Source: Macrostomum lignano
Taxonomy: Eukaryota
DNA length: 64,000 nt
Direction of reading: 5' to 3'
Assembly (NCBI GenBank): GCA_002269645.1
Contig: NIVC01000301.1
Span: 634,386 to 698,385 of the forward strand
Part shown: positions 28,001 to 34,000 of the stretch, one piece after another
Layout: each line of letters opens with the position of its first letter
Numbering within the stretch: position 1 is the stretch's first letter
Position numbers and translations under genes: made by a program
The notes under the pieces: model-generated
Database searches by the model: none
The model's input: the letters and a program-made list of their open reading frames with translations, nothing else
What the model was told of the DNA's origin: nothing

Positions 28001-31000
28001 AAATGTCTGTTCGACTCTTTCTGGACGATTATGTTTCCAAAGCAGAGTTGCAAGCGAGCTGAAGCAGAAGACGCGGGTGAAACACGATTGCCGATTTGGC
28101 GATGCCGGATGTGCCCGCGGCGGGATTAGGGGGTTAGGGGGGGGGGTCAATTTTTCGATCGCGTAAAGCATTCGGGTCATAAAAGCATCTGATGCGTTGA
28201 AAACATTGGTCCCTTCCAAAGTGGTTAAGCTTGCGCTCATGTTTGGATTTTGGTTAATTTAATTTGATATGTGAGGCTTAGAGCTGTGCATGCACACTGT
28301 AGTGTCACTCTGTATGCTGCATGAATATAAATTTTCTATGCTATTGCCTCTTTTTTTACCATTTTGTTGCCTAACGGTCACTTTAGTAATGCCAAGCCTC
28401 TGTTCGTAGTTACCCTGCGACCTTGAACCCCCAATTCTGGACTTCTATTGAGGTGCTAACTGGCTGATTCCTGAACAATTGCTGATCAAATTCCACCGTC
28501 TCCTTCTCAACTAACTCCGCGCGATTAAAGCTCAATGCTCACCTTGGCCGAACTGAACCCGTCATCTCCAGGTACTGGTCGTCCCTGCGCAACCTGGTGA
28601 TCTCCCTGCTCAACTCGATGCGGTCGATCATCTCCCTGCTGTTCCTGCTGTTCCTCTTCATCCTGATCTTCGCCCTGCTCGGCATGCAGCTGTTCGGCGG
28701 AGAGTGAGTGCCGGAGAGCTAGTATCAGTAAATGAGCACCCTTGATAGGTAGTTTGGGTTCTTCTCGCCAATGAGGGCAATCCCCAGGGCGCAGAGAGAG
28801 TACCTGCCTGCCCTGTGTTGAGAAGGTCAGGTCTTGAAACATTGACTTGAAAAAAAACTGAAAATGATGGAGGCGTGAAAGCCCAAATATATTCGATCCT
28901 CAAAGTGGAACTCCACTAGCTCCTACTGACCATTTACAGGGGATAGAAAGTGAGCAGGGATCAGGATAGGAAGAGCTTTATCACCTCAATCGATCGCTTA
29001 TAACCTCCAGCATGCAAAACGGCTCTAATGTTGTCCTTGCAGGTTCAACTTTCCGGAGGGCCGGCCGGCTCAGAACTTCGACACATTCGTCAAAGGCCTG
29101 CTCACGGTGTTCCAGGTGGGAAGGCGCTTCGCCTCGTGCGCCCCAGCTTTTTAATTATTCATGGGAAAAATCAATTTCACCTGCTGGCTTAGAGATCCGG
29201 GCGGGTGGGAATGAAAGACGGCACTACCTGGTTGAGTTGTTTTGAACTTTTAGCTGAGATTGTGCTTTGCTCCGTTGTTTTTTTCAAAACTCACCAGTCC
29301 AATAGTGAGTTGCAATGACCCCATGCAGCAAGAACTTCATCAACTGGTTGACGACCTTGATGCGTAGCCAGGTGAGGGGGCAAGTGGGGGCCGTGGCCCT
29401 CCCCTATCGATAGGCCCTAACTATACTCGTCAAACTGGTTGGCCCTCTTTGCAAAGTGACGGCAATTTTGCATGCTCGGTGCAAAACATTACTGAATAAG
29501 CGCTGGCATTGCTTAACTTGCTAATTATGTTAATTGCTAATACTCGTAGATTGCCCCAACGGTAGTTTTGCACAGTTTGTTTTTTGCCGTAAATTTGATA
29601 TTTCCTTTCTACGAGCGTATTAATTTACATTTGGGTGCAAAACTCTTTAAGAAGCATTTTTAATTGTATTAAGAGTACAAAGTTAATAGTACTGTCTGAA
29701 TTAATAGTATAAGTATATGCAGAAAGCAGGTTTATTAACAGCTCAGGTTAGAAAAAGCGTCAGAAAATGTGAGAGCGCTTCTGAGCGCTACTGACAGACA
29801 GACAGACAGACAGACAGACAGACAGACAGACAGACAGACAGACAGACAGACAGATAGACAGACAGACAGACAGACAGACAGACAGACAGACAGACAGACA
29901 GACAGACAGACAGACAGACAGACAGACAGACAGACAGACAGACAGACAGACAGACAGACAGACAGACAGACAGACAGACAGACAGACAGACAGACAGACA
30001 GACAGACAGACAGACAGACAGACAGACAGACAGACAGACAGACAGACAGACACACAGACAGACAGACAGACATCCAGACATACAGACACTAAGACAGACA
30101 GACAGACAGACAGACAGACAGACAGACACTAAGACAGACAGACAAACAGACAGACAGACAGACAGACAGACAGACAGACAGACAGACAGACAGACAGACA
30201 GACAGACAGACAGACAGACAGACAAACAGAAAGACAGACAAACAGACAGACAGACAGACAGACAGACAGACAGACAGACAAACAGACAGACAGACAAACA
30301 GACAGACAGACAAACAGACAGACAGACAGACAGACAGACAGACAGACAGACAGACAGAAAAACAGACAGACAGACAGACAGACAGACAGACAGACAGACA
30401 GACAGACAGACAGACAGACAGACAGACAGACAGACAGACACACAGACAGACAGACAGACACTAAGACAGACAGACAGACAGACAGACAGACAGACAGACA
30501 GACAGACAGACAGACAGACAGACAGACAGACACTAAGACAGACAGACAGACAGACAGACAGACACTAAGACAGACAGACAGACAGACAGACAGACAGACA
30601 GACAGACAGACAGACAGACAGACAGACAGACAGACAGACAGACAGACAGACAGACAGACAGACAGACAGACAGACAGACAGACAGACAGACAGACAGACA
30701 GACAGTAAACCTCCCCATTTGGCACGGGACGCACCAGGTGCTGACCAGCGAGGACTGGAACATGGTGATGTACGCGGGCATTCGCTCACAGCGGACTGCC
30801 AACTCGTCCGGGATGTGGGCCGCGGCCTACTTTGTGATCCTGCTGCTCTTCGGCAATTGTATCCTTTGCAAGCCACCGGGATTTCGCGAGGGGGTCCCAG
30901 AGTTTGATTGACAGTTTGTGCTTTGTTACTGTGCTCTTAATGCAGCACGAGACTCCAGAGTTTTCAGTTGTACATGAACTACCAACATCGCATCCGCAAT

Positions 31001-34000
31001 CCATGAAGTCCCGAATGCTTTCCCAGTTGTGTAAAAGTTTTTTTTTTGACCAAGCTTCTGCAAATGACTCGCATGCCTCTCTGCCGGCGATGCCCGGTCC
31101 CAAACTCAGGCTTCAACCTTTGCCCGAATATCCATGTCCGCCAGCATTTCCTATCCGCTGGAAGACTGGATCAGCCCTGACATGGCTCATTTAAATCAGA
31201 CGCTAATCGAATTGAGATAATAATTTGTTTATTCGTTCCACCGCGCCGCCCAGATTCTGACAGGAGAGGACTGGAACCTCGTGATGTACTATGGCATCAG
31301 GTCGCAGGGTGGGGTGGGCCAGGGCATGGCCTACGCCACGTATTTCATCCTGCTGGTGCTGTTTGGCAACTGTATCCTAGCAACAGCTGGCTTATTCAAT
31401 TTTAATACATAGTTTATCACTTTTTTGTTTATTTCTTCACACTATTAAGCTTACTTTCGCTCTATCTTCATTTTTTCTAAAAAAAGTCCTACAATTGAGT
31501 TTCAATTTTACTCTGTTGCTAAGTTAGCTTTCATTCTGAGCACTTTCGGCGGCACTTCTCACTGGTAATGGGCTGCTTCACCTTGGGGCTCCGGACACCG
31601 CACACCAGTTCAGTTCAAGGCTGCAACTCTCACGGAGCGATCAGCGTGCATGCTGACTTCTGCATTGGCTTATTTTATTAATATTTAAAAATTGTTACAA
31701 TACGCATCTCACCAGCTCATTGCATATTTTAATTCTATATAGCAAGCATGCCGGTTTTCATTACAAATCAGAGTAGCTGACTTGGGTTTCTTGGAAACCG
31801 GGGCACTTAAGCACTGGGGTGAGAAGTGTGAACCAACTGGAATGTCAAATCCGACTGCTGGAAAGCAGAGGATGGGGGAGCACTGTAGTAAAACTGATGC
31901 AGGATATTATTGGCCACAGTCTCTTTAGCAGCAGCAGCAGCAGCGGCAGCGGCTACTCATCAATCAAACCACAAGCTGAGAGAGCAGGGGGGGACCCCGG
32001 GACAACTGAGGAAGAGAGGAATTTTTGAGCAGGCGAAAATGATGAAAGTTTTTATTGGCACAGAGACCGGGACGAGGAGAGTCCAGGAGACTGGTGATGG
32101 GGCGGCAGCGGCAAGTTTGAACAGTCAATGAGAGAACTGCGATTGTAAAGTGCACAGCCCGGCTCCATCTGAGCTCCCAGTCTGGCTCTCCCCCAGATTC
32201 AAGCTCTGCGTGCTGCACGAGCGTTAAGCTGCCCAATTGAACTTTGAGTAACAATAAATTCTATCGCATAATATCGGGTATGAACGTTGCTTATTTAATC
32301 GCTACTGATTTCTCCTATTCACTGCCTGAGAACTGTTTAAACTACAATATCTATTTGCATTTATACAGCCTGAGTTTACCTTGCACTTGTCTGACTCGTG
32401 CTTAGAGTGCGCACTTTTCGGCATGGAAATGCCTGCGAACTTCACGTGTTTTCCGAATTTTCCTTAACCTAATACAACCGAAAACCAACCGCGTCAAGAC
32501 ACTCTATTGAACGTGTTTCTGGCCATCGCCGTTGACAACTTGGCGAATGCTCAGGAGCTCACGGCCATGGATGAGCAGCGCGAGAACGAGGAGAAAGAGG
32601 TGATGAAGGGGAGAACTCTGTGGGATGCAGCTGAGACTCTCGGCTATTTAAATTTGTCTCTAAGTGTCTAGGCTAAAAAAATAAGGTCCCGAAGGTCCCG
32701 AAGGTCCCGAAGGTCCCGAAGGTCCCGAAGGTCCCGAAGGTCCCGAAGGTCCCGAAGGTCCCGAAGGTCCCGAAGGTCCCGAAGGTCCCGAAGGTCCCGA
32801 AGGTCCCGAAGGTCCCGAAGGTCCCGAAGGTCCCGAAGGTCCCGAAGGTCCCGAAGGTCCCGAAGGTCCCGAAGGTCCCGAAGGTCCCGAAGGTCCCGAA
32901 GGTCCCGAAGGTCCCGAAGGTCCCGAAGGTCCCGAAGGTCCCGAAGGTCCCGAAGGTCCCGAAGGTCCCGAAGGTCCCGAAGGTCCCGAAGGTCCCGAAG
33001 GTTCTACATTGCCTCCTCACACTACCGCCCGCTTCCACCGAACTCCGACATCAAAGAAGCGAGAGGAGATGCTGCGCACGGAGGCCGAGGCCGAGGCCGA
33101 GCAGGCGGATCCCGCAGCGGCGACGTCGAACGCCCCGATGCTGAACGTGGTGCCGCCGACGCCGGGCCAGCTGATGAGCTCGTCTGCCGAGCCGCAAAGG
33201 TTCGACTAGTAAGCGCCTGGAAGCATGCAAATTCATGAAGCTTCGGTAGGGTTTCCAGACTATCATTTGCAACCAATGCGTCCAAACTTCCGTTAAGCAG
33301 TTGCAAGGACTCAAGGGAGCCTGGCGAGGGCGACAAGCTCACGTCGGAGTCGCGGCGACTGAACGGCCTGGAGGCGGAACGGGGGATCTTGAATCAGAGT
33401 GAGATTTGGCCTGGGTTTTGTTGCAATGATGAGTGAGCGAGTCTGGGAGGGAGTGACTTCATGAGTGACTTCATGAGTGACTTCATGAGTGACTTCATGA
33501 GTGACTTCAAGTAAGCGAGTTAGTGCATTAGCTAATGATCTCATGAGCGAGTTTATGAGCTCACGAGTTTTGTGAGTGAGTTTATTAGTTCATGATTGAG
33601 CTAATTAACATTTTTTAATTTCTACAAAACATTCGGCAGAGTCGGAAGAGTCGGGCCAGCAGGAAGAAGGCGACATGCTCATTGGCGTTGGCAAGCCGAT
33701 TCTGCCCTACAGCTCAATGTTTTTCCTGGGACCCACCAACCCGTAAGCTTGCCGCTCATTACTACTCAGTGAGTAGCTTTGATCGAACAAAGCTCACGTT
33801 AGTACAAACTCGCAAAAAATTGACAGAATCCGGCGATTCTGCCACTTCGTGGTGAACCTGCGCTACTTCGACCTGTTCATCATGATCATCATCTGCGCCA
33901 GCAGCATCGCCCTGGCCGCCGAGGACCCGGTGGACATCAAGAATTTCACGCCGAAAAATATCTACCTTGGCTATTTCGACTACGCCTTTACGCTGGTCTT

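Follow-up and report, generated by a model that had tools for sequence, protein, structure and literature searches.

How might a channel gene keep two adjacent versions of the same pore exon out of a single mRNA? This question is raised by a calcium channel gene on the forward strand of a 64,000-nucleotide stretch of contig NIVC01000301.1 from the flatworm Macrostomum lignano (the window, to which all positions below refer). In the part of the gene that encodes the pore of domain II, two homologous exons, which we call a and b, stand in tandem between a constitutive upstream exon and a shared downstream exon. We conclude that they probably result from an old tandem duplication of a Cav2 pore exon, the copies being made mutually exclusive by the incompatibility of the U2-type and the U12-type (minor) spliceosomes.

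The gene extends from about 10.0 to 53.05 kb of the window, on the + strand, and its sequence identifies it as a Cav2 (N/P/Q/R-type, cacophony-like) channel alpha-1 subunit. The filter motifs of domains I to IV read TMEGW, TGEDW (exon b) or TSEDW (exon a), TGEGW, and TGEAW, which together form the EEEE locus. The domain II Asp is present in the filter and the encoded C-terminus is WC. Ranked by similarity to the encoded channel, the solved structures of human Cav2 channels come first (Cav2.2, then Cav2.3, then Cav2.1), followed by Cav1 and finally Cav3. Homologues of the gene carry PF00520, PF16905, and PF08763. The nearest database protein is Macrostomum lignano A0A1I8J3F4, to which most of the conserved exons are about 75-97% identical, and the constitutive exon upstream of the pair has 96% identity with the M. 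lignano Cav2.

The region of the pair is organised as follows, with a slash marking splice junctions.

29043-29115, + strand: constitutive upstream exon, encoding the domain II S5-P1 turret and the P1 helix, and ending in phase 0 (TTCCAG/gtggga)
29793-30705, + strand: (GACA)228 microsatellite in the upstream U2 intron, 913 nucleotides (nt) long with 93% matches
30706-30737, + strand: acceptor region of exon a, U2-type CAG (...caccag/), with no U12 branch box
30738-30858, + strand: exon a, 121 nt, phase 0 to 1, with a 40-residue translation
30859-30867, + strand: U12-type 5' splice site of exon a, GTATCCTTT, matching 9 of 9 consensus positions
30859-31253, + strand: a-b hybrid intron, 395 nt, combining a U12-type 5' splice site with a U2-type polypyrimidine tract and CAG 3' splice site
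31254-31371, + strand: exon b, 118 nt, phase 0 to 1, with a 39-residue translation, preceded by ...ccgcccag/
31372-31380, + strand: U12-type 5' splice site of exon b, GTATCCTAG, matching 7 of 7 core positions
32458-32468, + strand: U12 branch-site box, TTTTCCTTAAC, a perfect match with the branch A at 32467
32497-32498, + strand: 3' splice site AG of the U12-type intron, with no polypyrimidine tract
32499-32599, + strand: shared downstream exon, opening with the junction Tyr and encoding the rest of the S6 segment of domain II (IIS6) and the start of the II-III linker

An earlier note on this DNA had described the interval 30738-32498, and direct reading and translation reproduced all of its coordinates and motifs. 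The two exons are tandem homologues with equal phases; both follow CAG and both abut GTATCCT. Either of them alone joins the shared exon at 32499 in frame, and a transcript in which both are joined (121 + 118 nt) shifts frame and runs into stop codons. Aligned to Cav2.2, each copy encodes the end of P1, the domain II filter, the P2 helix, the loop between P2 and S6, and the outer half of IIS6; the constitutive upstream exon supplies the turret and the greater part of P1. The translations also bear out the differences that the note had listed: the filter Glu is preceded by Ser in exon a and by Gly in exon b (TSEDW and TGEDW), the copies differ further in P2 and the outer IIS6, and an N-S-S sequon in the P2-S6 loop is confined to exon a. 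The 3' end of the shared downstream exon was placed by the loss of homology and a gtgatg donor. A perfect 9-nt minisatellite, AAGGTCCCG, begins 84 nt past this exon (32683-33002, + strand, 35.6 copies, 100% matches), and the window as a whole is unusually rich in micro- and minisatellite arrays.

The splice signals around the two exons belong to two different classes. The donor of the constitutive upstream exon (gtggga, 29116) is U2-type and its score lies inside the U2 range of the gene. Both alternative exons have U2-type CAG acceptors and both end at U12-type donors with the GTATCCT core, in agreement with the earlier note. When scored with a U2 donor matrix built from the 20 U2 donors of the channel gene itself, the donors of exons a and b reach -4.4 and -2.5 bits, compared with 3.1-9.7 for the gene's U2 donors. 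This places them at the 11th and 28th percentiles among all GT sites of the window, and on these scores a role as U2 donors appears to be excluded. A search for TCCTTAAC-like boxes with 2 mismatches or fewer found none in the 100 nt preceding exon a and none within 150 nt of exon b. Between exon b and the shared exon, TTTTCCTTAAC is the sole match with at most 1 mismatch and the only TCCTTAAC box nearby, in line with the note, which had placed a single U12 branch site ahead of the shared exon. This downstream intron, whose perfect TTCCTTAAC box lies in the 32458-32498 region, shows several features of U12-type GT-AG introns, namely RTATCCTT-type donors, a TCCTTRAY box, the lack of a 3' polypyrimidine tract, and positional conservation. 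Pyrimidines make up 0.45 and T 0.05 of the last 20 nt before its 3' splice site (32498), values lower in 1 of the 18 U2 acceptors. At the level of sequence, the a-to-b intron is thus the U12-donor/U2-acceptor hybrid that had been proposed.

The significance of these U12 motifs comes from their position and not from their frequency in the whole window. GTATCCT occurs 4 times where 5.3 are expected, TCCTTAAC occurs 2 times where 1.3 are expected, and ATATCCT is also at chance level. Whole-window enrichment of these motifs was dropped as evidence. However, 2 of the 4 GTATCCT sites coincide exactly with the frame-consistent ends of two homologous exons, and both TCCTTAAC sites lie about 30 nt upstream of exon starts that homology requires.

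The two acceptors of the pair are of unequal strength. The pyrimidine fraction of the last 20 nt is 0.50 for exon a, the second lowest among 19 acceptors of the gene, versus 0.75 for exon b, which has a good tract. The (GACA)228 array stops 32 nt short of the exon a acceptor, so that the AG-free stretch there is only about 31 nt. In the pre-mRNA, this array presents an AG every 4 nt, together with repeated AGACA (DRACH-like) motifs, next to a weak alternative acceptor. Ahead of exon b, the CGCTAAT motif reported previously is indeed present (31201-07); its assignment as the U2 branch is uncertain, with an AG following at 31215-16. Competing RNA structures were considered as well, on account of an inverted repeat (31373-86 with 31513-26) that overlaps the exon b donor, and were dropped because shuffled sequence folds just as well as the region does (z = 0.34).

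The position of the U12-type intron is conserved well beyond this gene. In the Cav2 genes of Schistosoma margrebowiei (L001) and of the fish Notothenia (L002), the sequence reads GGCAACT/GTATCCTT, at the identical codon and in the identical phase as the donors of exons a and b, and the orthologous position holds a single exon in each. The conserved U12 donor in these genes, next to an unduplicated exon, indicates that the U12 intron is ancestral and that the duplication created the hybrid a-b intron. In the genomic fragment P0043, the a/b region forms one continuous exon, with no intron at GN/Y. The channel gene itself contains another intron of the minor class:

16367-16579, + strand: second U12-type intron, AT-AC, at the conserved D1S1 position (ATATCCTTTT ... 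TTTTTCCTTAAC ... AC/GCCGTTCGAGTAC)

This AT-AC intron houses the second TCCTTAAC site and provides an internal control for the use of the minor spliceosome. The D1S1 U12 intron is conserved across Cav and Nav channels, and the NALCN lineage is without it (PMC6259924). In mammals, two U12 introns occur in most CACNA1 genes (PMC2831892). Among flatworms, schistosomes have a full set of minor-spliceosome small nuclear RNAs (PMC2770079). An Rfam search of the 64-kb window returned no small nuclear RNA and no other family, which is expected at 64 kb and uninformative about the genome.

We propose that the arrangement would work in the following way. An ancestral exon with a U2-type intron on its 5' side and a U12-type GT-AG intron on its 3' side would have been duplicated in tandem, each copy inheriting a U2 acceptor and a U12 donor. 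The intron between the copies would then be a U12-donor/U2-acceptor hybrid, removable by neither spliceosome. With the U12 3' splice site closed to it, the U2 donor at 29116 would have to join either acceptor, that of a or that of b. Likewise, the only U12 branch site, with its 3' splice site (32458-32498), would have to take either the exon a or the exon b donor. A productive mRNA would contain exactly one of the two exons, and inclusion of both or of neither would lead to a frameshift and nonsense-mediated decay. Exon b is probably the default, because it has the canonical sequence and a strong pyrimidine tract, and exon a is probably the regulated and faster-evolving alternative, because it combines a weak acceptor with a perfect U12 donor. 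The channel made with exon a would carry a Ser in place of the Gly that precedes the filter Glu, one more N-glycosylation sequon in its outer loop, and an altered outer IIS6. It is from the sequence that we infer mutual exclusion in vivo, the identity of the default exon, and any effect on permeation.

Several observations weigh against this interpretation. A stretch of 31 nt separates the branch A (32467) from the 3' splice site, a spacing on which the earlier note was silent, whereas the reported optimum is 11-13 nt in mammals (PMC3584512; PMC6717393). The donor of exon b is off consensus at +8 and +9. Three other tandem exon pairs of the gene carry only U2-type (GT or GC) donors, and the frameshift alone could render transcripts with both a and b invisible. 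Finally, the sole close homologue model, that of M. lignano A0A1I8J3F4, has exon b only.

Regarding the spacing, the AT-AC intron has a similar value of 30 nt (16549-16579) and the schistosome orthologue one of about 21 nt. A distance of 31 nt falls inside the branch search window of Olthof et al. 2019, which reaches -40 (PMC6717393), but it is far from the optimum. In the intron between exon b and the shared exon, we found neither a nearer branch box nor an alternative in-frame 3' site. For both U12 introns, 3' splice sites nearer the branch boxes were rejected, since with none of them would the frame or the conserved YTLLNVF and PFEY sequences be preserved. The spacing of 30-31 nt may represent a lineage feature of the minor spliceosome.

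The three other pairs are probably further mutually exclusive exons:

20743-20834 and 21435-21535, + strand: IS4 pair, 92 and 101 nt, with U2-type donors only
26089-26201 and 26885-26997, + strand: IIS4 pair, 113 and 113 nt, with U2-type donors only, that of the first copy being GC
41375-41494 and 42282-42437, + strand: IVS1-S2 pair, 120 and 156 nt, with U2-type donors only

Their U2-only donors imply that U12 incompatibility is not the general device of this gene and that such pairs are handled otherwise. One may then ask if exons a and b are exclusive mainly through the frameshift and nonsense-mediated decay, or through trans-acting regulators, the U12/U2 hybrid being incidental to the duplication. 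Both the stop codons of the joined 121 + 118 nt and the fact that the IS4, IIS4, and IVS1-S2 pairs manage with U2-type donors speak for this explanation, which we nevertheless consider unlikely. The hybrid layout may have arisen as a side effect when the exon was duplicated, yet it should still be expected to act. As U2 donors, the GTATCC sites score under most random GT sites, and exon b is not preceded by a U12 branch box; splicing from a to b would hence be chemically disfavoured whatever else operates. Moreover, both U12 donor heptamers have been retained while the intron surroundings were randomised: the intron flanks of a and b are identical at the level of shuffled sequence (within about 2 standard deviations), save for the GTATCCT heptamer. 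The frameshift that follows from joining a to b is a safeguard independent of the U12/U2 incompatibility.

One can also imagine that exon a is a relic, i.e. a pseudo-exon that is non-functional or nearly unused, with exon b alone being translated. Several features of exon a point in this direction. Its acceptor is weak, and it departs from 4 of the 20 columns that are at least 90% conserved among 101 unique Cav sequences (G>S before the filter Glu, GG>RT, and I>V), whereas exon b matches 20/20 of these columns and departs from its M. lignano counterpart at 2 of 39 residues. The exon a branch has about double the length of the exon b branch (0.26 versus 0.12-0.13, with a schistosome or a fish outgroup). 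To this can be added the M. lignano model with exon b only, and the failure of the exon a open reading frame, used alone as a protein query, to retrieve any candidate, no database protein sharing enough 5-residue words with it.

The comparison of the two copies, made within one genome, leads us to regard such a relic as quite unlikely. Exons a and b are identical at 24/39 residues and at 15/39 third codon positions, with 61% nucleotide identity. The proportion of synonymous differences (pS) is 0.72, i.e. saturated, and that of non-synonymous differences (pN) 0.29, giving a dN/dS of about 0.16 (Fisher test, p = 1e-4). Under neutrality, the saturated synonymous divergence predicts an amino-acid identity of about 7-17%, versus the 62% observed. 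At 0.5 substitutions per site, a simulated neutral copy reached an identity of at least 61.5% with P = 0.0014, and at 1.0 or more substitutions per site it did so in 0/5000 runs. The frame of such a copy stays open in only about 16-20% of cases, and its 7-nt U12 donor remains intact in less than 0.4%. The GC content at third codon positions is 0.88 in exon a, like that of constitutive exons, and 0.82 in exon b; it ranges from 0.65 to 0.98 in the other exons, compared with 0.41-0.48 for every third base of the introns.

The residues kept by exon a tell the same story. It retains the filter Glu, Asp, Trp, and Asn, as well as the FGN motif, and its SSGMW motif is shared with human Cav2.3. The sequence TSEDW is also found in the Cav2 fragments P0006 and P0111 from other organisms, which means that the change from Gly to Ser beside the filter Glu is tolerated elsewhere, or recurrent. 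By these sequence measures, exon a is the product of an old duplication and has been under purifying selection since; it evolves faster than exon b but is constrained.

The lack of exon a in the M. lignano model carries little information. Since joining the two exons breaks the frame, gene predictors are forced to drop one of them. This model (P0381, UniRef A0A1I8J3F4) looks mis-annotated at residues about 82-92, 560-635, 740-765, and 1280-1370. It leaves out the IS1 exon that follows the AT-AC intron, inserts 23 residues after exon b, opening with CIL (the translation of T/GTATCCT), and concatenates both IIS4 copies and both IVS1-S2 copies. Simple intron retention does not fit the CIL insertion, as the next residue is still Tyr. 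Because both U12 introns are mishandled and two exon pairs concatenated, the model is weak evidence either way. A protein query with exon a and its flanks retrieved only short fragments (none above 170 residues), with identities of at most 76%, and the absence of an exon a isoform from these results is uninformative because long proteins were seemingly not returned (nothing above 523 residues).

Could the second copy have been produced by the assembly, through collapsed haplotypes or a misjoined paralogue? A region rich in micro- and minisatellites can disturb assemblies. However, the two copies are only 61% identical in nucleotides, have unrelated flanks, and are of unequal lengths, and three more tandem pairs are found in the gene, two of them also in the independent M. 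lignano model. We consider an artefact of this kind almost inconceivable.

The arrangement that we propose for Cav2 has a close parallel in the JNK genes (MAPK8-10). The earlier note's description of the layout of their exons 6a and 6b agrees with published work (PMC1874599). As with exons a and b, these are tandem homologous exons with U2-type 3' splice sites and U12-type GT 5' splice sites, separated by an unspliceable hybrid; the upstream intron is U2-type and the downstream one is U12-type GT-AG. In JNK2, the pyrimidine tract of the hybrid intron makes 6b the default (PMC1874599; PMC3584512), and in the Cav2 pair too the downstream copy has the stronger tract (0.75 versus 0.50). The proposed origin of the JNK exons is likewise the duplication of an exon beside a U12 intron (PMC1874599). 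The two systems differ in that the JNK exons belong to a vertebrate kinase and are 72 nt long and in frame, whereas those described here belong to a flatworm channel, measure 121 and 118 nt, and shift the frame when joined. The layout was said to be rare, and this stands up: five human clusters have been counted, or 0.79% (PMC5740500). The appendix of the same study names MAPK8/9/10, MAPK14, CEP170, and CRTC1, with no channel gene among them.

Among channels, the nearest analogue is another one than that suggested before. The earlier note had compared the pair to exons 12a and 12b of invertebrate Cav3; it was right in locating these in the turret, but exons 15a and 15b of NALCN are closer. The NALCN exons, found in invertebrates including planarians, are tandem exclusive exons that encode the domain II P-loop and proximal S6 (PMC3557258), as a and b do. 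In NALCN, however, the filter residue itself switches (E or K), whereas a and b keep the Glu and Asp and change the preceding residue (G or S), and no U12 involvement has been reported there. Cav3 exons 12a and 12b are also alternative exons of the domain II pore module and alter ion preference (PMC9694082, PMC7382465). In contrast with a and b, they cover the IIS5-P1 turret upstream of the filter, which corresponds to the constitutive exon 29043-29115 in our gene. In Drosophila, the Cav2 gene cacophony has the exclusive pairs IS4A/B and I-IIA/B (PMC11828482), and the Cav2 gene studied here has an IS4 pair too. However, no domain II pore pair has been described for cacophony, which is not listed among the 19 fruit-fly U12-type introns either (PMC2831892).

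In the literature that we searched, neither a pore-exon pair of Cav1 or Cav2 nor a U12-locked pair of any channel gene was reported. If confirmed, the Cav2 pair would be an independent case from a protostome channel and would point to a general rule, by which the duplication of an exon beside a U12 intron yields a ready-made exclusive pair. The pair would also offer a natural experiment on the position that precedes the domain II filter Glu, on the P2 helix, and on the outer IIS6. For annotation, the consequence is that gene models of this lineage mishandle both U12 introns and concatenate or drop alternative exons, as in A0A1I8J3F4. A bolder version of our interpretation would hold that these are the first channel pore exons locked by U2/U12 incompatibility, of an origin independent of JNK through duplication beside the ancient IIS6 U12 intron, that the exon a isoform is a functional channel with an added glycan and measurably altered conductance, block, or gating, and that the 30-nt spacing of both U12 introns reflects relaxed distance rules for the branch site. 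We regard this version, taken as a whole, as possible but doubtful.

Other features of the gene and its surroundings were noted on the + strand. The channel gene contains two GC-AG introns, at 26202 (CACTAG/gcaagt) and 38831 (CTGAAG/gcaagac). In the intron that follows the large exon extending from IVS4 to the C-terminus, there are three tandem copies of a unit of about 1.5 kb (about 44975-48150), and identical open reading frame peptides of these units begin at 44975, 46485, and 47994. Downstream of the channel gene, exons of Cys-loop (neurotransmitter-gated) receptors are found at 56854-57420 and 62255-62620 (Pfam Neur_chan_LBD, Neur_chan_memb), and these possibly belong to two tandem genes.

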